This document shows positions 1 through 17,285 of a stretch of DNA of 17,285 nt, piece after piece. The DNA is from Geosiphon pyriformis uo1 (taxonomy: Eukaryota > Fungi > Glomeromycota), in assembly GCA_016748015.1 (NCBI GenBank), contig JAAOMT010000431.1, positions 1 through 17,285 of the forward strand. The letters run 5' to 3'. Each line of letters begins with the position of its first letter. Positions within the stretch are counted from its first letter, which is position 1. The translations under genes were made by a program, and so were the position numbers. Below the pieces are notes generated by a model, which made no database searches, was not told where the DNA came from, and worked only from the letters and a program-made list of their open reading frames with translations.

Positions 1-261
1 TCTAGTAGTTCCAATCCCATGTTCTAAAGAAAAACCAAGTAAAATATTGTCTGTCGAACGTTTTGAACTTTTATTATTCAAGCAATTGAATAGTTCTTCA
101 GGTGTTTTCATATTGCGCATTAGGTATTTTTTCACAAAGTTGGCAACTTTTGAATATTCACTAGTTGGAGAATTGGCCAAATTTTCTCTGATGATAATTG
201 ACGCTCCTTCAAGCCAGTCGAGGTTTAAGGTTGCGTTTTCAAATGATGAAGTTGAAGACAT
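1..261 (-). CDS. 5' end (87 codons) of a Sel1-like repeat protein gene copy running off the left edge
   Basis: Inverted copy of 15366-15626: MSSTSSFENATLNLDWLEG...NILLGFSLEHGIGTTR, ATG at 261-259, open to position 1. Whether it continues into an SLR array cannot be seen. Confidence 0.8.
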   Translation of the reverse strand, partial: MSSTSSFENATLNLDWLEGASIIIRENLANSPTSEYSKVANFVKKYLMRNMKTPEELFNCLNNKSSKRSTDNILLGFSLEHGIGTTR

Positions 262-1006
262 GATTTTCAAATGACACAGATAAGTTAAAAACCTTGAATA
301 TTTTCTATGGGTAAAGAAAGATTTTTAACGAGTTCATCTTTGCTATTAAATAGGGATTTCAACTTATAATTTTTTAAATCACATTCCCAAGCAGGCTAGG
401 TCTTGGGAAAAATCTGAAACGCTGGAATATTCTGAAAATAAATTTTACTTCATAAAGGTTAGATTCCTTCATTTACATTGCTTAAATGGGCAAAAGGCGC
501 ACTATGCTTGTAATTATATCATCGCTATTTTTTTAAGTTACACTCTAGTTGGTGATTGCTGACGTCAATAGCTCATTGATAAATTTCTTTAAGATTTTCT
601 ATATGCATAATCTGGTTCTAAGGTTGCAGATCTTCTTTTCTAGCCCTAGCTGATTGGTAATAGCTCCAATAACAGGTTTAACATAATTCCTTCTTTCTCA
701 TTTATCTTTGAATTTGAGCGAGTAAATAAAACTAATTTAAGTATTAACGTGAAAATCCTAAGCCTTAACATTTAGCCTAAAACTTCATTTACTTATTTAT
801 ATTGAAGATCATCGAGAACAGGAATTCAAACTTAAATGACTGCAAAGATGCAAAAAGGCGAACTATGCATATTGCTATTTTTAGTTTAAATGAAAACTTA
901 AAATTGAGTTACATTTTGATTGGTGATTGCTGGTTTCAATAGCTCATTGATAAATTAGAGATTTTTCTAAATGCATAATTTAGTTTCAAAGTTGCATATG
1001 GTCTTC
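1..1006. repeat. Left arm of ~1 kb inverted repeat (may extend beyond the window start)
   Basis: Reverse complement of 14610-15626. By manual comparison 1-696 pairs with 14931-15626 with no mismatch or indel seen (coordinate sum constant at 15627). 697-1006 shows roughly a dozen substitutions and two small indels. Similarity stops after GTTGCATATGGTCTTC (1006). Confidence 0.97.
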
Positions 1007-1130
1007 GTTAGCCCAGCCGCTTTTTTTAATATCAGTGATAGCTTGATAACAAGTTTAATACAATTTCCCTTGACTCTCGCTTCCATAATGTTTATCTTGA
1101 ATTTCAACGAGTCTATAAACCCAATTTAAT
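481..1130. repeat. Degenerate tandem duplication (units ~481-745 and ~831-1130) upstream of the SLR gene
   Basis: Shared collinear blocks: CTTAAATG..CAAAA(A)GGCG.ACTATGC, TTGGTGATTGCTG...TCAATAGCTCATTGATAAATT, ATGCATAAT, GTTGCA, ATAACA.GTTTAA, TTTATCTT(T)GAATTT..CGAGT. Confidence 0.85.
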
Positions 1131-4100
1131 TAAATAATTATCAAGAAACTGCTTTATGCATTTTATCAATAAATTATTATAAAGAAATGGTAAACCTCGA
1201 TATTGCTTTGATTTTCAGTCCAAAATTGTTGAAACTTAAATTTTTATCCGTTTTGAGCGTCTTTCACTTGGGAAATATTTGTATAAAATTTACTTACAAA
1301 AGTTACATCTCTTGCCTTGAGACGAAGTATAATCAATTTATAAGATTTGATATATTCGGCATTACTTTATAGAATAAAAAAAATTTTGGCTCTAATAAAA
1401 GAATTCACTCAAAAAAAGAAATTGAGTATATTAAAAGCTAACAATGTAATTTTACCAAGTTTATTAATATCTAAGTTCTTAAAATCTGAGAACAGTTCGT
1501 TTCTGCAAAGCATTTTAAATAAAAAAAATTGTTCACCTGATTGTGTCATTATAGGTTTAAGAATAAATTGATCCTTGTTAGTCAAGCTCGGGATGATGAA
1601 CAAACTAAAATTAAAATGAGGGAATAAAGAAGTTGTTATGAAGCAAAAGTTAGCAAGACCGAGTTATACTAAAAGATTCAGAACAAGTTTTGTGAAGCTA
1701 TAAAAAACATTAAATCTTGTTGTTTCAAAATTACTAGCGTCTTTTTTTAATTGAGTTATTATTTAAGTGAAATCGAATCAATTATTAGAACAGAGTTTTA
1801 AATAAATTAATCATACGTATAATCAATCAAATAATTTCTGTTCAAACCACTTTGCCAATTCCGAGTTCACTAACAAACTTTCTTTATGAACTTTAAAAAA
1901 TACCTGTCTAATTGAAATTCAAATTGACATTTATATATTAACAGTAGCCAATTTTTTCAAAAACCTTAAAAATTTCATTAAGTTTTTAAAGCTGACATAA
2001 AAATCTGGCCAGATTCATTGTGTTTTATATTTCAAGATACTGAAGTATGAGCAATAAGCGTTCAGAAATTCAATGTTGCAAACTTTCTTTTTGACAGTTT
2101 CAAAATATGAAATTCAATATCCCATGAATTTGCAAAGTTTATTTTCCTTTAACACTTTTTCAAACTTAAAAAAGAGTAGTTTAGAAAAATCCTTAAAATT
2201 AGGCCACCTATTGCTTTAAGCATGTGGTCCAAATTATTTGAGATTATTATTATCATATAAACATCTTTAATTTAAATGCCCTGATCGAATACCTTATAAA
2301 ATAAATATTTTGGAAAGATTGATTTTAAAAATATATTCTTTGTATTTTGCATAATAAAATTTTATTAAATTTCAAACTCGAAAATTTTATTATGTGAAAA
2401 TAACAAACCTACTATTAAAATCCATGTTTCATCTTTCACGAAATGTAAAAAGTTTTTTTTCGATAAAAACCTACAATAAATCATAGAGATGTACTTTTTT
2501 TTTCACCCAATTGAAAATAAATATTGATGAAATATTTGAGAATGCTAACCTTTATTCAATCAAAAACGATAAATTAAATTATTTCATTTTACACGAGTAT
2601 TAATAGCCAATTCATATTAGGAGTAATAAATGAATGATATAGAAAATTCATAAGGTTATTTACAATGATACGCTATTGAAATTTCAAAAATTTATGGGGG
2701 AATTTAATTTCAAAAACTCTGCTAATTAAACATGAATCTGACTTTTAAAAATAACCATGACAGATTTTCGACGAGCTTTAGCTAATTTTTTGTTCTTCCA
2801 AACTTTTGTTATGGACTTTCATCTCGTGGCTATTTTAGCCTTTCTGGGGACAATATTTTATTAGAGATTTTTGACTTTGCCACAAAACAACGAGCAATAG
2901 AAAGCTCAATGGTCATAAGATATGAGAAGTGATGTGCCGTTAACTGACGCAAGAATGTCAAATAGCATTATCTTAATTGTAAAATATCCATTCGGAAACA
3001 CTAGTTTTACAAAAAGTCCAAATTAGCTTAAACTCTTTTTTTTGATACCTTTTTTTAATGGTGAAGTTTCACCAAAATTTATTAAAAGGAATATATATTT
3101 TGGTTTTTTGCAATATTTGCTACAACTTTCTGTCATAACCAAATTCAGAGATACCAAAACAAAGCTAGGTTTAAAAGTATGGAAAATGGAAATGTTTTTG
3201 AAAAATTTATTGCTGCCAAAATAAAATTTGCTGGTTTATAATAATATGATATTATTTATTTTAAAAACTTGGTTTTAACAATTTGTGACTTTAACTTATT
3301 AATTAATTTTTATAAACAAAGAAGATATTAAAATTTTCATTCTGTCAAATTTAAAAAATTATCAGTTAAAAACATTTTTAAGACCAAATTAGTTAACGTT
3401 TATAATTATTAAAAAGATGCAATTGTTACTTTTAAAACTGGTGCATTAGAGAAACTAAGATTATTCTTAATTTTTTTACTTTTAATCAATTATTTTTTGA
3501 TTTTTAATGGTTAATTTATTTAATTTATATTTAGATAGCTGTTAACTGTTGAGTTAAAACTTTTTTAAAACAAAATTTACCAAACTGCTTATATGTTTGA
3601 ATTTTTAAATAAAGTAAACATTGTATTAAAAATTATTATATTTAAACTAATAAATTATTGCCAATTTTAAAAAATATTTAAAATGTTTTTGGCCAACAAA
3701 AATGCTATACTATGATCTGTATTTAGAGATAATACATACAATCCAATTAAATAGTTAAAAAATCTGTTATAACTAACCAGTATAATAATAATTCCCAAAT
3801 TCAAATAATTGGTAGATATCTTGAGTTACTTGGTTCCATTAATATAAACAAAAACTAGTTAATTGAGTAAATCTTGATAGAAAATTTAGTTTTTTACCAA
3901 AAAATGAGAACTAATTTATTTTATGCTTTTTTAAAAAAGCAATTATTCAAAAATAAACAACCAAAAAATCTAGAATTTTAACAAAACAAAAAAAAGGTTG
4001 CTTATATTCAATTATAAAGTGATTCATGTATTTATAACATATAAATCGGTATTTTTCAAAGTTTATTCTATAGTAATACTTGAAAAAATATGAAAAAGCT

Positions 4101-4726
4101 TAAAGGTATTAAAAATTCATAATTATATTCAATTTTTCAATAAAAATCTTTTTGAATGCAAGATTAAATTGATAATAGAGTATTCTTTAATATATTTTTG
4201 GTGTCATTTTTCAAAATAACGAAAAGTACTACCAAAAAGCAGAGATATCAATAATATACTATTCACAAAGAAGTCCCTTAAATAATAAATCAAATAGTTT
4301 TCGAGATTTTTGTTTATTTGTGCGATTTCAATCTGAGATCTCTTTATTAAGGATTGCATGTAAAAAAAAACAGATTTGATTCAATTTGGCAATGCCACAA
4401 AAATTGATGGGGGACAATGAAGTGATTTTCTTGACTTGAGGTCATTTTAGATTATCATTTTACAATTCCCAAATTGAGCCTTTAAAACCGCAAATCAGAA
4501 TGGAAGGGGTGATTTAGTTTTTTGCAAATCAAATCTTTCATACACAGGCTTTAATAATGTGCACTTTCGAAAAATAAAAGCTATGAAATCAGTGCGTTTG
4601 ACATTGATCAAAATTAACATCTTTTTTTGATTTTTTTGACAAGCGGGTGTCTGGCAAAATTCAATCACAATACGTATCGTTTCAATATTGATTTTCGATT
4701 TATAGCAATCGTTGTTCTGTTCTCGA

Positions 4727-4797
4727 CTCACGTGAGCCAATAACGATGCCAGCATGCCTCACTTCCTGCTATGTCATCATTTGAGACAGTGACGTCA
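4727..4797. promoter_or_regulatory. Cluster of candidate cis-elements (E-box palindrome, CCAAT, CRE) in a locally GC-richer island
   Basis: CTCACGTGAG palindrome 4727-4736, CCAAT 4737-4741, TGACGTCA 4790-4797. No associated gene identified. Confidence 0.3.
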
Positions 4798-6678
4798 GTA
4801 GGCTGGAAGATAATATATTTTTTCAGACACAATTAAACGAAAAAAAAAGAATGGAATAATACTGAAAATACTTCACGTCTTAGAGCCTGTAACTGTCCTG
4901 GTTTGCTAACTTTTCATTTGGCCTTCCTCATATTTGTACTTCATTAGCCTGTTCTTTAAAAAGGTCAAAATCTCAGAAGAGAAGGGAAATTAGCAGGCAA
5001 ATTTCTTCAGCTCTTCCCACACCAACAATTCAAGAATTCAGAAATGTTTTTTCTCATTAAAAGTAAAAGTGACACTTTAATTCTTAAGGTGAAAGAACTA
5101 ATCAAAAAGACTTTCAACACATAATTAAAAATATTGAATATAATAAATTTATTATCTGGAAAGTTAATATTTCTTCTAACCAAAAAAATAAAATTAAGCA
5201 TCTCAGTCTCAATAAAGCAAACAGTCTAGATGAATTCAAATAATTAGTAAATATTAACTTAAAAAGTTTTTTCTTAAATATTTTCACACCATAATTAGAA
5301 TTATTCCTGATAAATAATTGATATTGGCTTTTTTTTTAATATCTCAATTTGTTTTAAACATCATATTTTTAAACATTGACTACTGGTGTGTTGAAAACTA
5401 CATTTTATATTATACATTTTTTTCTTATATATATTGATTAACAGTAAAAAAAATTTGGACCAAATATTAAAATATTCTTAAAAATGATTATTTATATGAA
5501 GAAGCTTAAATTCAAAATAAGTCTAATAATTTTTTAGATAGAACAAAATAATAAAATTTGAGCATTGATTATTTGTCAAAATTATATTGTAATAATAACT
5601 TTTATTTTGTTTTTAAATACTTATTTATTTGTATTATTCATTTTCTTAATTATTACAAACTAATTTTGAATATTGTTAAGATAAATTCTTTTTTAAAAAG
5701 TACATTAATTATTTTATATTAAATATTTTAATAATTCAAAACTTTGAATAATATGTTATTGAATTTATATTAACTTAATATTTTTAATAAGAATGAAAAT
5801 TTGTTTAACAGCATATTAATTACAATAAACTAAAGTTGATAATATATAATTATTATCGTAAATTAGGCATTAACAATTACAAAATTATTATTAATAATAA
5901 ATTTTATTTTTTTATTTCATTCTTAATTTAGAATTTGGCACTTATATTTATGCTTTATAAATAATAAGTAAAACTTCAAATGAGATTAGAAATATACAAA
6001 ATAAATAATATTAGCACATAAACATTTCAGATAACTTAGTTAATTAATTTTTAAAAACAAAATCTTTGGCAATTAATATTTATATAAGTTCAGTTTTTAA
6101 AACATCATATAATAATCTAAAAATCGGAAAAATCTTGTCAAAAAAAGGCACACTTTTAAATATAGACTTTTTAGTACACTGGCTGTTTTCTGTATAATAA
6201 TTTCATGTAAAATCAGCAGTTTTTTGGCTAGTTAAGCTAAATGTTACACCAAAACTGTTTTAATCCAATCAAAATTTTTTACCAAAAAGGACATCAATGT
6301 ACTTAATAGTACATTTGATTTTTCATTAAGCACAATTAGTAAACTCACAGAAGTTCTTTACAAAATGTTATGCATTGTTTGACACAACAGAACACCTATT
6401 TTAAAATACTTTTTTTTAATTTCAATCAGCAGCAAATACTCAAACTTGGTTATAGTACTGGCCTAATTTTTCAATCTCTTAAATATTCTTGTAACCAAAA
6501 ACTTTAAAATCTAAAATAAAAATTTTACCGTGTTAAATTAGCATATTTATCTATCTGCGAAAATCCAAACATTATTCAAAGAGGTAAATAGCTGGTGCAA
6601 CTAAAAAAACTTTTAAGCGATCATTCAGAAGCAGAAATTCACATAAATTATTTCAGGTATTAACTACTAAGTTATTAC

Positions 6679-6743
6679 CAATGAAGCAGTCAGTTATTGA
6701 GCAAAGAATAAAGTAATTATCAATGAAGCAGTCAGTTATTGAG
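6679..6743. repeat. Short direct repeat, 42-bp period
   Basis: CAATGAAGCAGTCAGTTATTGAG at 6679-6701 and 6721-6743. Confidence 0.9.
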
Positions 6744-7084
6744 AAATGAAACTTTCAAAAAAATAGTGAATACTGATTTTTTCTATTAAAAAAAAGGCTA
6801 TGTTGAACTCACGGAATAAGATACTCCCATAATCATACAGATATATGGATTTAGGAAGGATAATGAGAAATTTTACATAGGATCAATTATATTTTAACAT
6901 TGGGACAATATTAATTCTTTACTTTCTTTAAAAGACATCTATTCTCTTTGATGATCCAATTTTGGCTTTAGTGATTGTAAGACAACTTAAATTTAAATTG
7001 GCGTAAGATTTTAAATATTACACTAAATCAGGATTTTCAAATTAGGTTCGACAAAAACAATCTTTCGAAAGAGTTTTACTAATA

Positions 7085-7478
7085 CAGTCTGGGACAATGG
7101 AACAAATTTACAACCTAATGAATTCGGGCCGATTTGCATTCTGTAACATACTGTAGTATAGAACTGGAACACAAGGTAAGTGGCCAAGTCTCTGATAAAT
7201 TTTTTAGCGCATTATTATAATAACTTTTTTAAAAAACCTTACTTTGAAATGTCAGTTTCTAAGGCAAAAAAATGCAACCCAAGCCGTGCTATATTTGTGG
7301 AAGGAGGGAAATGGACGACGAAAGAAAATTACGACAAATGCTGATATTCCCTAATCAGGTTAGGGGGATCGATGAAGCGGCTTTGTGAACTAATTATAGA
7401 AGATTTACCTTTAAAATAAGATTAATTTGATTTGTTAGTTGAGATATAATAGCCATCCATATTATTTGTCCCAGAATG
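7085..7478. mobile_element. Candidate non-autonomous Tc1/mariner-type element (MITE, ~394 bp)
   Basis: TA|CAGTCTGGGACAA ... TTGTCCCAGAATG|TA: 12/13 terminal inverted match, starts with CAG and is flanked by TA on both sides, as expected for Tc1/mariner. Confidence 0.5.
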
Positions 7479-7854
7479 TATCAGTAATTTGATCCAATTT
7501 TATCTTTTCTTTTTTTTTCACTGGTGATTTCTTTGCAAAGCTAATTAAAGAATATTGTTTGACCGTTCTATGAAAATTCTTTAGCCGTTATTTGAAGCAA
7601 TCAGGCAAATTGCTATTTATAATGACTCATTTGTTTCAATTTATTTAAAATTGGGTTGTCTCTCAACTGCTTGAAAGCCAAAAATGCACCGATAAAAAAT
7701 AATTGGTAAACTTTTGAGACAGATAAATCTATTCTCCCTATTTGGACTTTAATTTTGATACACAAGCAAAAACATTTTATTATTGCATAAAAAAATACAA
7801 AATAATAATTATAATTAAAAATATTTATTTATACTATTTCTTGTTTTTTTTTAT

Positions 7855-8780
7855 ATTATAAGCTCTATTCCAACTACTGAACTCTCTGTAATTTAGTGAA
7901 GATGTACAAGATTTGCAGCAAGCTGATCAGGTAAGCAATTTTATTATTTTGTTAATTGGACTTTTAAGTTTAAATTTATTTTTTCTACATTATTTTATAA
8001 ACCTCAAATATTCTGAATCAGGTCATATTTGATAGTCATGAAATAAAATTAGCATCATTTTCCTGACTTTTTCAACAATTTTTTGGATCATTGTCTTTCT
8101 ACAAGGCTCACTTTATAAAATTATTTCAAAAAGCATATCAACAGATGAAAAAAGACCCCATTTTTATATTTTAGTCATAAAATCAGCATTGAGACTGTGT
8201 TGGGAAGCTAAAAATTTTACCAAAACCTGAAAGCTGAAGCTGAAAAACAACTCCATACATTAACTTTAAATGGGTGCTTTACAGACCGGAATAATATATT
8301 TGTACAAGAAACTGCCAAATTTTTAAGGTTGGTTGGTTTGGACGAAATGTGCCTTCATCTGAAAATATAACTTGACTCCAGTTAAAAACTTTATGACTTT
8401 TTGCCCATTGCAAACGGGGTTTTTTGTTTGTTAATGAGTAAAAATTTGGAAAGGTTAGCCACATATTTACTCTGGCTCGTACGTAAACGTCGTTGAACAG
8501 AGTCTACACTAATTTTAACGTTTTGTTTTTTCATTTCCCTTTTATATCAATAATTAAATGAATTTTTTTGCAAGTTGTACAATTTTGGCATATTGCTTGG
8601 GCGTTGTAATTCGATTTTGATTGGTCACTTGGGTTTATTGTTTCCTTACATCTTTTAGCCAATAAAGAGCTGTAGACTTACTACAATGAATGTACTTTGC
8701 TATATCTGCAAGTCCAAGTTTTTGGGTTTGGGATGTATTTGAAAAAATGATTTCGTATCGCTTATATATTGGAACTTGAT
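7855..8780 (-). mobile_element. Degenerate Tc1/mariner (DDE_3-type) transposase pseudogene
   Basis: Minus-strand fragments in the expected order: HTH region KRYEIIF..KLGLADIAKYIHCSKSTALYWLK, ISVDSVQRRL, RLQWAKSHKVFNWSQVIFSDEGTF (first catalytic D), KHPFKVNVWSCFS, DNDPK (second D), and a decayed WPxxSPD..E region near 8010-8040. Many stops and frameshifts. Boundaries approximate. Confidence 0.88.
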
Positions 8781-8975
8781 CATCGTAAAATATCTAATGT
8801 GGAAGATCTATCATTCGGAGAATTTTCTCTATTAGACTTTAAACCCAAGAAAAAAATCTTTTTAAAACTGAGGAACCTTATTTATTTACCTGGAATAAAG
8901 AAAATTTCTCGATTTTTACATTATTTACAAAATTAAAAAGTTACTCATATTGAGTCTAGATCTGATTTTATTGTA

Positions 8976-8977
<2 letters not shown>

Positions 8978-9015
<38 letters not shown>

Positions 9016-9045
9016 TAATAATAATAATAATAATGATGATAATAA
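8978..9045. repeat. (AAT)n microsatellite with GAT interruptions
   Basis: About 22 trinucleotide units read directly. Confidence 0.97.
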
Positions 9046-9136
9046 AAATACGGGTTTATGGTTTTACTATAGATATCCAAAATCATTTTTAAAAATTCAG
9101 TTTTAATTTGTAAGGAATTTTTAATATCTTGATTAA

Positions 9137-11182
9137 ATAGCTTTCTTTTAAATCATCCTCATTATCACCCTCCTTATCTCTCTTTACCTTTATAAAACAA
9201 AATTATTAAAAGCACCAGGCCGGATTCCTATTTTTGGTAAGTTTTAGAAATTTTGCATTTTATCAATATTAACAAACCCCCTATGATATTCTATATCTTA
9301 AATTTTTTTTATTATAGGACATTTATTTTTAATAAGTCGGGATATCTATAAAAACGTAATTAGAATTTAATATTCTTTAGGTTACTATTAATTGTTTATT
9401 TTATTAAAAGACATTTTATTTAATCTAGGTACGCAGATTTAGGTGAAATATTTACAATTTACATTGGCCCTCAGCGCTTTATCATTCTAAACAGCGCTAA
9501 AAGTTGTTAACGAATCTTATTCAAAAACGTAAGTATACATTTTGAGATTCTACTCACTTAGAAATTTAATAAAATAGAAAAACTTTAATATTTAATTTTT
9601 AATAAGTGGTGCGATTTATTCCACTAATAAAATCACATATTTAAGCAAAACTTTCACACAAAATAAGAGTATAATCACCTTATAATGAGTGGTATCGAAG
9701 AGTGATGATATTTGGTAGGAGATTAATTAATCTATTGATTATTTTCATTTTTTTTTTAAAAAAATCTTGAAAAACTTGATATTAAATTGAAAATTTTTAA
9801 TATTCACTTTGATATCTCGTAACTTTTTAACTCAACAAAAAGTTGAATCGTATTATAACTTGATTGAAAAAGGCACCAATGACCTTCATAACAAAATTTT
9901 GAATGATTGCAACGAGCCCAACGGCATCGATCCTTACCATTAACTACGTTTCACCTCATTTAATATCATAATCAATGTCCTCTTTACAATCCAATTGAAA
10001 GATTTTAATGATCCACTTTATAAAAAATTAGAACAATGTTTTACAAAAACTCTCGAAATTTTGGCTTTAAAAAATGTGTTACCAAATTTATTCCCAATAT
10101 CATTTTCATTTCCTCCCTTTCGACAAGAGATCCCAAAACTTATCGAAACACGTAATGAATGGTAAAAAGTAACGGGAAACTTATTGAAAAGAGTAAAGGA
10201 TGATTCAGAAAAGAAATATTGTGTTTTTCGAGATTTTTTAGAGAAAATAATTCAAGGCTCCATTGATGAGTTGGGCGTTGTTAAATTGTGCAATTATTTT
10301 ATATTAGCAGGAACAGTTAGTTCAGAAATCTTATTTTATTAGATTAAAATCACTATTGTGACTCTGATAAATTCTTTGTCAATTCTAGGAAAGCGTAGCA
10401 TTTACTATATATTTGATTACTACAATTTTGGCAAATAATCCAAATTTTCAGCAGAAAGCGCACGAAGAATTAGACAGAGTAGTTGGAAATGAACGTTTAC
10501 CAAACATATCGGGACTTTAACTCACTTCCATATATCTGATCGCTAGTTAAAGAAGCTCTTTGTTGGGCTCCTCCAGTTAAGAAGCTTTTTTATAAGTTAT
10601 TTTTCCCCAAAATCAACTTATCTTTATATTAATCATTGTTCTATTATTATTATTAGAATCCAACACCACTGAGGTTTCTTGAACAAGATAATGATGAATA
10701 TTTAGGATATCATATACCAAATAATTCATGGTGTCTGCATGAATATTTTTGCGTTTAATTCAGACAAAAATCGTTATAAAGATCCCGACGTTTTCAATCC
10801 TGATCGGTTTCTTGATTCAAAAGAGAGTATGGCTACTTCGGGCAAGGGGTCCCTACCAAAATTGAGATCATTATTCTTTTTCAATTGGGAGACGACTTTG
10901 TACTGGAATTTACTTGGTAAGTTTTAATGATTCTTTTGTGTCTTCATATTATTTTCCCTCTAGATTTCTAAAAATAAATTTTATTTTTAATATGCTGAAG
11001 CGAAATTACTTTTTATTTTAAGTAGTCTACTTTGGACCTTTAAATTCGAAAACGTGAAATGAGATGTAACTGGAAGGGTTCTTCCAATTGATCTAAAAAA
11101 TTCGTTTAAAAGTATTCTTCAGACTCCTAATCCATACAATGTTCGATTCATTACTAGACATCAAGAAATTAAACCATTTTAA
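9137..11182 (+). pseudogene. Multi-exon cytochrome P450 pseudogene
   Basis: N-terminal membrane anchor plus Pro-rich APGRIPIFG, GEIFTIYIGPQRFIILNS, I-helix ILAGT, QQKAHEELDRVVGNERLP, K-helix KEALC (ExxR lost), FNPDRF, heme motif FSIGRRLCTG (10878-10907), C-terminal PYNVRFITR with stop at 11180-11182. Disablements: probable start is ATA, stops at 9149, 9941, 10163, 10537 and 11060, plus frameshifts. Confidence 0.93.
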
Positions 11183-11932
11183 CCTATAATTAAATATTAA
11201 AACTATTAAAATAACATTTTCATGCTCCTTTACTTCTTTGTTTTAAACATTATAATGCTAATTTATGAGAAGATGTATAAATATATTTTATAATTAGCAT
11301 TTTATAAAATATTTTAAATATTTTAAGGTTACTGGGGTAACTAAGTTATGTATTTAATAGAGAATGAAAATACTAGCTATCTTAATATTGTAAAAATTTA
11401 ACATTCACCTGAATTATTAAAAAAAATTTTGAATGTTTTTAAAATATCTGAATTGATTATGTATAATGAAAAAAAGATATGAATAATTAAAAATTTTAAT
11501 ATTTTTATTTTAATCAATAAATATATTTCTTATTAAGCATAACCCAAAATTCTTGTCCAAAATTAGAAAACTTTTTTATACTATAATTTTCATAAGCTCA
11601 TGAAAAATATTTTATATGTAAAGTAATAACAAAGAATTTCCTTTTTCCAAGTAAATCGATATTGTGTTCATGCTTTTTTTTTTTAGGTTTGCCCTTGTAT
11701 ACATCATAATTTTAAGTGCTTATTTTAATGAATTATTTACAAATAGATTTTTATTAATTTTATATATTTAACAAATTCAATTTTATTAAAATATAAAAAT
11801 TTGATTGTACTTGTTTGTTGTGTAATATATCTATAAAATTAGCATATGAGATAGTATTAACTTTATTCTTGAAAGGTCCTCATCAAAAGATTTTTATAAA
11901 ACCCAAGAACTTGAAAATATTATTAATTTTAG

Positions 11933-13493
11933 TCAAAGTTTTGGATTAAAATTAGGGGTATTAATAAGGTTGGTGCAGTCTTCAAATATAGTTCCAAAAT
12001 AAGGGGTGTCATGGAAGCTTGTTCCTGTACCATCTGTCCCTAAATTACATTGCTGCAAAATGAGAAAAAATAAAATTGGTAAGCTTTATTGTTCTTAAAA
12101 TTATTAAAAAGTTTAACTAAAATAAGCAGACATACCAGACTTTCACCATATTGCTTTTGATTTTTATTTGAAAATCCTGGACATTCATAGACTATTGGCT
12201 CATTACAATCACAATCAATACTTTCAATCCAATACTCAGTCCCAGGGTGGATATATGGTACACCCGTTGGGGAATATTTCGGGAAATGAGGGAAAAATTC
12301 GTTAGTATATGTAATTCTAAACATCTTAAGTTTATTACTTCGCTTATTGATTTGTTCAGCAAGTTGATAATTCCCTGGACGTGAAGAACCAAAGGTGACA
12401 ACGTGAATGTAAACATTTTCATCAACAGGTGAGAAAGCCAGGAGTAAAAAGCCTAATATTTGAGCATAGACTAAGTGGAGTAATAAATTAATAGTTCGAA
12501 TTTTAATTTAAAATATATTTAAAAATTTTTAAGAGGAAAATATTGACTTTCTAAAATTTCTTACATCCTCCAACTCTATGCCCAGTCAGATAAATATCGA
12601 TTCGTTGATTTGATCCCATTCCATTTCTAATTCCGTTAATTCCATGTTTTATTAAACTTGTAAAAGCTTTACAATATTGATCTTTTAACATTGTCCACCA
12701 ATCCGAATTAACTTTAAAATAACCCTTGGCTCTTAATTTTAACATTTGAAACTTGGTAGTTTCTAATTGTATTTTGTTTATTTTAGGCCCTAATTTTTCA
12801 GAGAAATAGGCAAAAATGTTAAAAATTATTATTGATCCATAAAATAGTTTTTGATTATTAAAAAAAAAAAAGGAGTAATATTTTTGTTGAGAAAGAAAGA
12901 AAGAAAGAAAGAAACCTTTCCAAAACTTACCGCCAAAAGATCCAATAATGATTGGAATTTGTGGATTGTGTGCAACATGAGCTGATAAATTAAGAAGTAT
13001 GATGGTGAAATTTTTTATATTGAAAATTTTTTGTTTTTTTACACCCTATCTTACCAATAAATCCTGGACCTGATATTGAAGCCTTAGCACAATAAGCAAG
13101 ATTTGCCCACATAGCCATTTTAGTAAAAAGTGTTAAAAGGCCTTTATCTTTTAATAACGTCTTGGGTGGGGTAATATTTTCATTAAAATTAAATCCATTC
13201 TTAGCTCTTGAAAAGAGTAATTTCTTTTCATGATCGTCTTCATATATTTCTTCTTGATGAGTAAAATTAAATTTTAATTTGGGTAACAGTTTGTATTCTA
13301 TTGAATTTAAATTGTATGAGATGGAAGTGGTTTTTCTTAAAAATTTATTATAATAATCTTTGAAAAATGTCAAAAAATTAAATAAAATGTAAAACAAAAA
13401 AAGTGTTTGAATAATTTTTTTTCCTATAATTTTTTTAGACGAACAAATGTAGTTATGATTTAAAATCATTTTTTGATAAAAATTATATTTCAT
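11933..13493 (-). CDS. Class 3 lipase-like (alpha/beta hydrolase) protein, predicted catalytically inactive. Exons 13493-13055, 12981-12931, 12789-12565, 12470-12136, 12052-11933
   Basis: Four GT..AG introns with compatible phases give an open frame: WANLAYC, IIIGSFGG, IYLTGHRVGG (GHSxGG position), VVTFGSSRPGN, FRITYTNEFFPHFP, YIHPGTEYWI, FHDTPYFG. The 5' end and start codon are uncertain; a further intron near 13365-13425 is possible. Confidence 0.85.
12891..12914. repeat. (GAAA)6 microsatellite in intron 2 of the lipase-like gene
   Basis: Read directly. Confidence 0.95.
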
Positions 13494-14609
13494 CAAGTTT
13501 ATTGAAAAATGTGGTCTTCAAACATTTATTTTATACATGTGAATGAAACAGCGGATTATCTTGATCAAGAAAATGAAATAACATTGACAATCTGTATGTA
13601 AACACTAAAATTAACAATAAAAATTAGAACAAAACCGTTCTCCATTTATATATAAACAGTATTGTCGAATGTATATTTCGTCTTTTTGACCTAGAATTTG
13701 TTTTATTTTGATAATTTTAATTAAAAAAAAAGGAAATCAATTCAGTTCTTTTTATATTTATTCCAAGAGAAATTTGAAATTTTAAACCTTATATGCAGGA
13801 TCATATTTTCAAAGAAAAGAATTTCATTTATAATTTACATGTAAATCAATCAAATTCTTTGTAATTCTTTGTAATTCTTTGGCATTTTTTGTTATAAGAA
13901 ATCTGATTTCTTAAAGTTTTTAGAATTCTTTCATTGATTGATATTCTGTATAAAATAATTTTAATATGAAATTGCTTCATTGAAGAAATTTACAATATGA
14001 AAAATATTTCAAATTTATTAATGTTGATTTCATTAAAATTTAAAAACTATAAAGAATTTTTGTTTAAATTATCAGCAATTAAGAAAACACACATTAATAA
14101 ATCTTTTGCATTCGATTCAAATTTGTTTACCATTGAGAAACTTAATTTCCAAATCATATCTTTTGATATGTGAAAATCATAACATTAGAAATAGTTTTTT
14201 CCGTGGGAATTTTTCTCAAACCCGTGATCCCACTTTATCATGTTGACATAATCTGACCGATATGGTTTAGCGTATACTAATCAAACCATTTTCTTGTAAA
14301 AAAATATTTAAACTCTCTTACAAAATTAAATTAAATCTATAATAATATACAAGCAAATCTTTATAAATTACACAAATGTAAAAGCCCAATTAGAGAATAG
14401 TCTATAAAACACCTGACACAGAATTTTATCGTAATTTTATGTCTCATTTAAGGTAATCACAACACTTTCAATTCAAAACCTTTGATCTTCTTAATACGTG
14501 ATTATAGGAATAAATTAATTATTGCCAGCTAAAACTAAATCTATGCAAGATCGAGATATTTCTCTTGCTGTTCCAAAATTAATTTGCATGAGATATAAAA
14601 ATAAATAAG

Positions 14610-15626
14610 GAAGACCATATGCAACCTAGAAACTAAATTATGCATATAGAAAAATCTCAAAGAAATTTATCAATGAGCTATTGAAACCAGCAATCACCAA
14701 TCAAAATGTAACTCAATTTTAAGTTTTCATTTAAACTAAAAATAGCAATATGCATAGTTCGCCTTTTTGCATCTTTGCAGTCATTTAAGTTTGAATTCCC
14801 GTTCTCGAAGATCTTCAATATAAATAAGTAAATAAGGTTTTAGGCTAAATGTTAAGGCTTAGGTTTTTCACGTTAATTATTAATATTTAAATTAGTTTTA
14901 TTTACTCGCTGAAATTAAAAGATAAATGAAAAAGAAGGAATTATGTTAAACCTGTTATTGGAGCTATTACCAATCAGCTAGGGCTAGAAAAGAAGATCTG
15001 CAACCTTAGAACCAGATTATGCATATAGAAAATCTTAAAGAAATTTATCAATGAGCTATTGACGTCAGCAATCACCAACTAGAGTGTAACTTAAAAAAAT
15101 AGCGATGATATAATTACAAGCATAGTGCGCCTTTTGCCCATTTAAGCAATGTAAATGAAGGAATCTAACCTTTATGAAGTAAAATTTATTTTCAGAATAT
15201 TCCAGCGTTTCAGATTTTTCCCAAGACCTAGCCTGCTTGGGAATGTGATTTAAAAAATTATAAGTTGAAATCCCTATTTAATAGCAAAGATGAACTCGTT
15301 AAAAATCTTTCTTTACCCATAGAAAATATTCAAGGTTTTTAACTTATCTGTGTCATTTGAAAATCATGTCTTCAACTTCATCATTTGAAAACGCAACCTT
15401 AAACCTCGACTGGCTTGAAGGAGCGTCAATTATCATCAGAGAAAATTTGGCCAATTCTCCAACTAGTGAATATTCAAAAGTTGCCAACTTTGTGAAAAAA
15501 TACCTAATGCGCAATATGAAAACACCTGAAGAACTATTCAATTGCTTGAATAATAAAAGTTCAAAACGTTCGACAGACAATATTTTACTTGGTTTTTCTT
15601 TAGAACATGGGATTGGAACTACTAGA
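14610..15626. repeat. Right arm of ~1 kb inverted repeat
   Basis: Reverse complement of 1-1006. Begins GAAGACCATATGCAAC at 14610. The outer limit is set by the window edge on the left arm. Confidence 0.97.
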
Positions 15627-17285
15627 GATTTAAAAAAAGCATTTTTAGAATTTCAGAAAGCAGCAAATGCAGAAGATTCTGTTGGACAATTCTTTTTAGG
15701 CTATTGTTACAGCAATGGAATTGGTGTTTCACAAGATCGAAGAAAAGCATTTAAACTCTATTTAAAAGCAGCAGAGACGGGTAATACAAATGCACAATAC
15801 AATCTTGCAACATGTTATCGAAATGGATGGGGAACAACGAAAAACTTTGAAAAAGCATTTGAACTCTATTCAAAAGCAGCAGAGGCGGGAAATACAGATG
15901 CACAATGCAATCTTGGATGGTGTATTCAAAATGGATGGGGAACAACGAAAAACTTTGAAAAAGCATTTGAACTCTATTCAAAAGCAGCAGAGGCGGGAAA
16001 TACATATGCACAATTAAGTCTTGGACTTTGTTATGAAATTGGATGGGGAATAACGAAAAACTTTGAAAAAGCATTTGAACTGTATGCAAAAGCAGCAGAG
16101 GCGGGAAATACAGATGCACAATGTAATCTTGGATTTTGTTATCAAAATGGATGGGGAATAACGAAAAACTTTGAAAAAGCATTTGAACTGTATGCAAAAG
16201 CAGCAGAGGCGGGAAATACAAATGCACAATGCCATCTTGGATGGTGTTATCGAAATGGATGGGGAACAACGAAAAACTTAGAAAAAGCATTTGAACTGTA
16301 TTCAAAACCAGCAGAGACGGGAAATACAGATGCACAATATAATCTTGGACGGTGTTATCAAAATGGATGGGGAACAACGAAAAACTTAGAAAAAGCATTT
16401 GAACTCTATTCAAAAGCAGCAGAGGCGGGAAATAAATATGCACAATCAAATCTTGGACTTTGTTATGAAAATGGATGGGGAACAACGAAAAACTTAGAAA
16501 AAGCATTTGAACTGTATTCAAAAGCAGCAGAGACGGGAAATACAGATGCACAATATAATCTTGGACGGTGTTATCAAAATGGATGGGGAATAACGAAAAA
16601 CTTTGAAAAAGCATTTGAACTGTATGCAAAAGCAGCAGAGGCGGGAAATACAAATGCACAATACAATCTTGCAAGATGTTATCGAAATGGATGTGGAACA
16701 ACGAAAAACTTAGAAAAAGCATTTAAACTCTATTCAAAAGCAGTAGAGGCGGGAAATAAACTGGCACAATACAATCTTGCAAGATGTTATCGAAATGGAT
16801 GTGGAACAACAAAAAACTTTGAAAAAGCATTTGAACTCTATTCAAAAGCAGCAGAGACGGGAAATACACTGGCACAATCAAATCTTGGACGGTGCTATGA
16901 AAATGGATGGGGAATAACGAAAAACTTTGAAAAAGCATTTGAACTCTATTCAAAAGCAGCAGAAACGGGAAATACAGATGTACAATATAATCTTGGACGG
17001 TGTTATGAAAATGGATGGGGAATAACGAAAAACTTTGAAAAAGCATTTGAACTGTATTCAAAAGCAACAGAGACCGGAAATACAGATGCACAATATAATC
17101 TTGGACGGTGTTATGAAAATGGATGGGGAACAACAAAAAACTTTGAAAAAGCATTTGATTTCTATTCAAAAGCAGCAGAGGCGGGAGATACACAGGCACA
17201 ATATAAGCTTGGACTTTGTTATGAAAATGGATGGGGAATAACGAAAAACTTAGAAAAAGCATTTAAACTCTATTCAAAAGCAGCA
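15366..17285 (+). CDS. Sel1-like repeat (SLR/TPR-like) protein, >=640 aa, 3'-partial, no intron in the visible part
   Basis: ATG at 15366 (in-frame TAA at 15300), open to the window end. ~75-aa N-terminal region, two divergent SLR units, then 14 highly similar units of consensus GNTxAQxxLGxCYxNGWGxTKNxEKAFELYSKAAEA, matching the canonical Sel1 pattern A..LG..Y..G.G...D...A...Y..AA..G. Confidence 0.96.
   Translation, partial: MSSTSSFENATLNLDWLEGASIIIRENLANSPTSEYSKVANFVKKYLMRNMKTPEELFNCLNNKSSKRSTDNILLGFSLEHGIGTTRDLKKAFLEFQKAANAEDSVGQFFLGYCYSNGIGVSQDRRKAFKLYLKAAETGNTNAQYNLATCYRNGWGTTKNFEKAFELYSKAAEAGNTDAQCNLGWCIQNGWGTTKNFEKAFELYSKAAEAGNTYAQLSLGLCYEIGWGITKNFEKAFELYAKAAEAGNTDAQCNLGFCYQNGWGITKNFEKAFELYAKAAEAGNTNAQCHLGWCYRNGWGTTKNLEKAFELYSKPAETGNTDAQYNLGRCYQNGWGTTKNLEKAFELYSKAAEAGNKYAQSNLGLCYENGWGTTKNLEKAFELYSKAAETGNTDAQYNLGRCYQNGWGITKNFEKAFELYAKAAEAGNTNAQYNLARCYRNGCGTTKNLEKAFKLYSKAVEAGNKLAQYNLARCYRNGCGTTKNFEKAFELYSKAAETGNTLAQSNLGRCYENGWGITKNFEKAFELYSKAAETGNTDVQYNLGRCYENGWGITKNFEKAFELYSKATETGNTDAQYNLGRCYENGWGTTKNFEKAFDFYSKAAEAGDTQAQYKLGLCYENGWGITKNLEKAFKLYSKAA
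15780..17285 (+). repeat. 108-bp coding tandem array, 14 units (last truncated by the window), no indels
   Basis: The xAAAAAGCATTT motif recurs exactly every 108 bp: 15633, 15741, 15849 ... 17253. Confidence 0.98.

Follow-up and report, generated by a model that had tools for sequence, protein, structure and literature searches.

A head-to-head pair of Sel1-repeat genes in Geosiphon pyriformis: a young inverted duplication with a probable arm-to-arm conversion tract

The ampliconic palindromes of the human Y and X chromosomes are inverted segmental duplications with gene conversion from arm to arm, and their arms extend over tens of kb to Mb. The phase-variation switches and shufflons of bacteria are site-specific invertible segments with short recombination sites. 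Here we describe a locus of the fungus Geosiphon pyriformis in which the starts of two Sel1-repeat (SLR) genes, each with its upstream DNA, face outward from a 13.6-kb interior. The locus takes up an entire contig (G000:C309), and “the window” refers below to this whole stretch of 17,285 bp, which contains no N and has SLR sequence at both ends. In our preferred explanation, to which we assign a probability of roughly 65%, the two genes are young head-to-head paralogues, 13.6 kb apart, with an arm-to-arm conversion tract. A young inverted duplication with a conversion tract is a type of structure that is already known. We see no sign of a purpose-built DNA switch; the locus is what local duplication ordinarily produces in a gene family that is large and changes fast.

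To our knowledge, repeat-induced point mutation (RIP) has not been described in Glomeromycotina-type fungi, in contrast to Podospora anserina. In that species the nwd/hnwd genes (het-d, het-e) form a WD-repeat family with concerted evolution of repeats within and between loci and with pseudogenes made by RIP (PMC1805685, PMC2873952). In arbuscular-mycorrhizal (AM) fungi, the copy-number expansion of Sel1 gene families has been described (PMC9453076; PMC13465315). The published assembly of G. pyriformis comprises 129 Mb in 795 scaffolds with 29% GC (PMC9453076). Our genome-wide searches were run over a 128.3-Mb assembly of 792 contigs.

A first-pass annotation of the window, made from its letters, had claimed that upstream DNA and the first 87 codons of the SLR gene occur twice in inverted, outward-facing orientation. 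The alignment bears this out: positions 1-1010 on the minus strand match 14606-15626 on the plus strand at 97.6% identity over 1021 alignment columns, with a spacer of 13,595 bp between the arms. In a repeat search the same arms appeared as three inverted sub-arms (1-747/14880-15626 at 99%, 737-956/14664-14883 at 97% and 955-1010/14606-14661 at 91%). The inverted repeat is real, and a chance match of such length is excluded. The 87 codons are present in both arms, but they do not mark the limit of homology; the left arm stops at base 1 because the contig stops there, and this contig end coincides with the expected start of the tandem array. The elements of the repeat are as follows.

1-1010, minus strand: left arm, with SLR codons 1-87 (bases 261-1) reading off the left contig end, plus 749 bp of upstream DNA
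14606-15626, plus strand: right arm, with 760 bp of upstream DNA plus SLR codons 1-87 (ATG at 15366)
14931-15626, plus strand: identical tract of 696 bp, 100% identical to 1-696 on the minus strand; last difference at 14930
14606-14930, plus strand: diverged inner arm; compared with 697-1010 it has 14 substitutions and two indels, of 4 and 7 bp (~4%)
1011-14605, no strand: interior of 13,595 bp, not repeated elsewhere as a unit
15366-17285, plus strand: Sel1-repeat gene, open for 640 codons to the contig end

The differences between the arms are confined to one end. The inner 325 bp contain every one of the 14 substitutions and both indels, and the outer 696 bp contain none. Had the outer tract diverged at the inner-arm rate of ~4%, it would carry about 29 differences, compared with the 0 observed. 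If the 14 substitutions were placed at random along the 1021 bp, all of them would land in the inner 325 bp with a probability of (325/1021)^14, or ~1e-7. Since the indels measure 4 and 7 bp, they are not homopolymer errors. The window thus shows both sequence features of an inverted segmental duplication, namely inverted near-identical arms around a unique spacer and a tract of excess identity. We infer that conversion caused this step in identity: the outer 696 bp would be a gene-conversion or crossover tract, from ~14931 outward, and it probably runs on into the arrays.

After each other, the closest relatives of the two arms are copies on contigs C587 and C542, which are 87% identical over the 1-kb block. 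At the 16 sites where left and right arms differ by substitution (a tally that includes 14602 and 14605, just outside the arm), these relatives agree with the left copy at 8 and with the right copy at 8. This even split indicates a star-like divergence at a depth of about 2% per lineage, and the identical tract must postdate it. The order of events that we infer begins with an SLR gene and ~0.76 kb of its upstream DNA, which would have been copied in inverted orientation beside a lipase-like gene, with 14606 as the breakpoint. The right-type copy would later have been copied to C587 and C542 within a segment of at least 3 kb, and both local copies would then have accumulated ~2% change each. 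Homologous recombination, in the form of gene conversion, would then have erased the differences over at least the outer 696 bp, that is, over promoter-proximal DNA and the gene start. A crossover between the 1-kb inverted arms could also invert the interior, as an occasional by-product and not as a programmed switch.

The DNA upstream of the two genes bears on both the authenticity of the left junction and the relative age of the copies. An element of 105-245 bp is repeated at ~378-bp spacing ahead of the SLR gene:

14611-14716 and 14990-15094, mirrored at 904-1148 and 533-743: copies of the upstream element, with the core ATCAATGAGCTATTGA
1011-1148, minus strand: continuation of the upstream unit, in the left copy only, 138 bp past the arm boundary

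The core ATCAATGAGCTATTGA, with up to 3 mismatches, lies upstream of 23 of the 70 family copies that we sampled. The match between 904-1148 and 14866-15094 is 70%, and the right copy retains only 106 bp of the unit. As the unit continues across 1010/1011, the junction at this point is natural, which argues against a chimeric join there. The left copy has the fuller, and probably the older, upstream structure, because it alone extends the ~378-bp-period unit past the boundary. A putative CRE site, TGACGTCA, was rejected as a promoter element conserved across the family, as among the 70 copies it occurs only in the two window arms.

The right gene carries the repeats that define the family. Its translation matched Sel1 (PF08238) with E=2.3e-178 and 572.8 bits (cut-off 30.7) in 15 stretches. 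An array of 108-bp (36-aa) units starts at ~15635 and comprises 14.3 copies with a 90% match; register-shifted units within it are 87-91% identical, so that the tandem repeats of this gene share high nucleotide identity. The best other array in the genome is 84% identical to the right array, and any partner array on the left lies outside the assembly: no other contig carries the 28-nt junction sequence. Because the units within the right array are more alike than this array is to any other, homogenization acts mainly within arrays. A family member on contig C666 has an exon without a kinase that ends shortly after its array.

To place the pair in context we compared it with the rest of the family. 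A genome search with a conserved 20-mer of the gene start gave at least 97 copies (45 plus-strand and 52 minus-strand), compared with 0 for the reversed 20-mer as a control. Neighboring copies within 40 kb are direct in 10 cases, convergent in 7 and divergent in 5, which makes 12 inverted. Neighbor orientation is therefore random, and what sets the window pair apart is its near-identity alone, not its inverted arrangement. In the first-pass annotation, dispersal of the 1-kb block in many copies of random orientation was named as a finding that would speak against the proposed invertible or exchange locus. The family partly bears this out, although the near-identity of the window pair stands out from it. 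Pairwise comparisons covered 70 of the 97 gene-start copies and gave a median identity of 84% for this block. Identity is at least 99% in six pairs; five of these aligned over at least 200 nt and the direct C591 pair over 164 nt, and the C582 and C640 pairs were compared over 1.6-kb pieces.

C309 (window) pair: divergent, 100% in the gene-start block
C666 pair: 787-2623 (plus) and 10808-12416 (minus), convergent, 100% in the block and 99.7-99.8% over arms of ~1.6-1.8 kb
C640 pair: 198121 (plus) and 227193 (minus), convergent, 99.3% in the gene start
C582 pair: 85433 (minus) and 89434 (plus), divergent, 99.1% in the gene start
C591 pair: direct, 99.4%
C591-C615 pair: on different contigs, 99.2%

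Five of the six pairs are neighbors less than 30 kb apart. The pairs are mutually only 79-88% identical and thus arose independently. A genome search for other inverted SLR pairs, as proposed with the first-pass annotation, therefore succeeded, with the pairs on C666, C640 and C582 each at least 99% identical. With three other inverted neighbor pairs and one direct pair that are near-identical, local duplication or conversion recurs in this family. The C640 copies differ at few sites across promoter and gene start, and more densely within the array. The interior of the C666 pair measures ~8 kb and holds a P450 paralogue that is 68% identical to window positions 9824-10928. The plus-strand copy of the C582 pair lies ~870 bp from a contig end.

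How does this locus compare with the systems described above? As in the human palindromes, inverted arms that hold copies of a multi-copy gene surround a unique spacer, and arm identity exceeds what the age of the duplication would give. Also as in the palindromes, there is no dedicated recombinase, and a crossover would invert the spacer, not delete it. In contrast, the window arms measure ~1 kb (they are cut by the contig end and are possibly longer), the spacer is long relative to the arms, the genes belong to a fungal receptor-like repeat family, and conversion is deduced here from one identity step. By analogy, the window pair may work like a small palindrome, through homologous recombination between its inverted arms. 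The Podospora nwd genes resemble the SLR genes in being a fungal family with highly conserved tandem repeats, concertedly evolving paralogues, variable repeat number and pseudogenes inactivated by C-to-T change. On the other hand, the repeats in the window are Sel1 and not WD40, there is no NACHT domain, and the other arrays are at most 84% identical. Gene-conversion-homogenized inverted segmental duplications and the Podospora WD-repeat family are the nearest parallels. With the Sel1 families of AM fungi the window shares PF08238 repeats, membership in a very large family, a repeat-rich region and a low GC of ~25-30%; near-identical inverted neighbor pairs and conversion tracts are not described in that work (PMC9453076; PMC13465315). 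The resemblance to bacterial phase-variation segments is that inverted repeats bracket a segment. Unlike in those segments, each arm is a gene copy of 1 kb, an inversion would switch neither a promoter nor a coding sequence, and the host is eukaryotic.

Several observations weigh against two young paralogues with a conversion tract. The identical 696 bp lie at a contig end and could be partly an assembly product, by collapse or consensus borrowing; such collapse is the chief caveat to conversion, and the copy number and orientation of the arms are those of the assembled contig alone. In the C666, C640 and C582 pairs, near-identity could reflect very recent duplication and not conversion. Near-identical pairs make up 4 of 12 inverted versus 1 of 10 direct neighbors, a difference that is not significant (Fisher p=0.22; Mann-Whitney p=0.053). 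The assembly concern can be taken further: the left paralogue may be real and its outer 696 bp derived from the right copy by repeat collapse, or the contig may be chimeric, so that the perfect identity, and possibly the linkage too, would not be real. This would fit a contig of only 17.3 kb that has SLR sequence at both ends and stops on the left exactly at the expected array start. It would also fit the fate of SLR arrays elsewhere, which are often contig ends or N gaps (C666, C582 and C587; in C666 the gaps lie at 1253-1723 and 11708-11950, 471 versus 243 N), and the finding that the left continuation is on no separate contig, as expected if copies had merged. However, 14 substitutions and two multi-base indels separate the arms over the inner 325 bp, and the inner arm joins unique DNA by the natural continuation of the upstream unit, which indicates that two distinct inverted copies were assembled. 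Bubble-popping is not expected to collapse a tract that is 4% diverged. The other near-identical pairs retain differences of 0.2-0.9% between their arms, so the assembler does not routinely collapse such copies. Even if it had merged the outer tract here, the true divergence of that tract must be far below 4%, and the identity step therefore stands. We consider an artefact unlikely. Users of the assembly should nevertheless treat copy number and array content at SLR loci as unreliable, because the arrays are so often gaps or contig ends.

A more elaborate possibility, close to the model put forward with the first-pass annotation, is a functional inversion and repeat-exchange locus, in which frequent recombination between the arms would flip the 13.6-kb interior, the arrays would trade 108-bp units and a variable Sel1 receptor would be diversified. 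The conversion-like identical tract does abut the array, four independent near-identical inverted pairs exist in the family, and the C640 copies differ more densely within the array than at the gene start. Exchange of repeats between paralogous loci is documented for the Podospora nwd genes (PMC1805685). Yet any left array lies outside the assembled sequence, other arrays are at most 84% identical compared with ~88-91% between units within an array, and neighbor orientation is random, with one direct pair equally near-identical. The interior consists of a pseudogene, a lipase-like gene and repeat debris, which could be flipped without evident regulatory effect. Among the 20 interior open reading frame (ORF) pieces scanned we found no recombinase or transposase family; the matches were p450, Lipase_3 and a weak helix-turn-helix. 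This agrees with the original observation that no recombinase is visible, it sets the locus apart from site-specific invertible segments, and it leaves homologous recombination, presumed from the start, as the only plausible route. What survives of the exchange and inversion model is that the arms exchanged sequence, as the identity step suggests; nothing points to flips of the interior, and we regard such a functional locus as improbable. Another candidate is a mobile composite element of the foldback or Pack type, with the arms as its ends and the P450 and lipase genes as captured cargo. There are repeat relics within the interior. However, the arms are gene starts with promoters, not the termini of an element; they run outward into coding arrays, so that any termini would lie beyond the contig. 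Nowhere else in the genome does the interior recur as a unit, and the four copies of the arm sequence differ in their outer and inner contexts. With no transposase among the scanned ORF pieces either, a mobile element is very improbable.

The window has a GC content of 17-37% and hardly any long ORFs other than the Sel1-repeat gene, and a tRNA scan of it found none. Between the arms, the P450 pseudogene, the lipase-like gene and the relics of transposable elements (TEs) that had been read from the sequence all hold up, with PF00067 and PF01764 matches and multi-copy repeat debris.

9105-11210, plus strand: cytochrome P450 pseudogene, disrupted by in-frame stops and by a frameshift ahead of the haem-binding motif
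12043-13517, minus strand: Lipase class 3-like gene in three open pieces (PF01764, E=2e-5 at 12043-12507)
~8161-8774, minus strand: dispersed repeat, at least 14 copies at 71-73% among the matches listed

Parts of the interior have paralogues at 66-85% identity. The P450 fragment at 10706-10924 matched PF00067 with E=6e-5. Its stops and frameshift were scored relative to a paralogue on contig C572, which is 85% identical and intact-looking, with long open exons that include the haem-binding motif. The P450 and lipase genes have the same order on C572, and this common order marks the window interior as an old segmental duplicate in its own right. C788 carries additional P450 copies in a cluster. 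At the nucleophile elbow of the window lipase-like gene (12554-12640, minus strand) the sequence is GHRVGG, with the catalytic serine replaced; three lipase-like paralogues on C572 have GHRVGG or GHAVGG at this position, again with the serine replaced. The Lipase_3-like genes here and on C572 may therefore form a family of inactive lipase-like proteins. The repeat at 8161-8774 looks by eye like a degraded mariner-type element. Pfam searches with the mariner-like and other interior ORF pieces gave no significant match even at E<=1, with weak helix-turn-helix hits only, so the label of TE relic draws on copy number and on reading by eye. An (AAT)24 microsatellite occupies 8978-9050, and a 42-bp unit is present in two repeats at 6669-6750.

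The relatives of the right copy carry a different kind of change. Two stretches define the comparison:

13140-16102, plus strand: segment also present on C587; the part from 14565 is also on C542
14363-16102: window part that corresponds to the hypermutated copies, C587:103199-113198 (offset ~5750-7400) and C542:1-10000 (offset ~5031-6594)

The flank upstream of the right copy (13140-14605) is 97-99% identical to C587, whereas the gene part is only ~87% identical, because the C587 and C542 copies are C-to-T hypermutated. From ~14813 on, 14-31% of G/C sites in these copies are C-to-T or G-to-A compared with the window, and the fraction is 20-31% in all but one 150-bp bin. G/C-to-A/T change in the adjoining 97-99% identical flank amounts to 0-6%, and 0-3% of A/T sites changed in the opposite direction. 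When changes were polarized against 66 other copies, 34 of the 37 derived changes were C-to-T or G-to-A. Context bias is weak, except at CpG, and stop codons were created. The same C-to-T skew is present in C629:85364, C629:108547, C440:11046 and C656:1262070. The pattern suggests that the C587 and C542 paralogues carry RIP-like hypermutation. In neither the AM fungus Gigaspora margarita nor Mucoromycotina were RIP signatures detected, according to a published report (PMC8647823).

One could speculate that inverted near-identical pairs are a recurrent, selected architecture, in which promoters, gene starts and units are converted without the deletions of direct repeats, while unprotected copies are destroyed by a RIP-like process new to Glomeromycotina; taken as a whole, this proposal seems improbable to us. 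On the preferred explanation of two young paralogues joined by a conversion tract, the window and its three independent companions offer a concrete example of local turnover in the very large Sel1-repeat families of arbuscular-mycorrhiza-type fungi. The steps of this turnover are duplication in either orientation, homogenization of neighbors and C-to-T decay of other copies. Of these, the RIP-like hypermutation may matter more than the inverted repeat itself.

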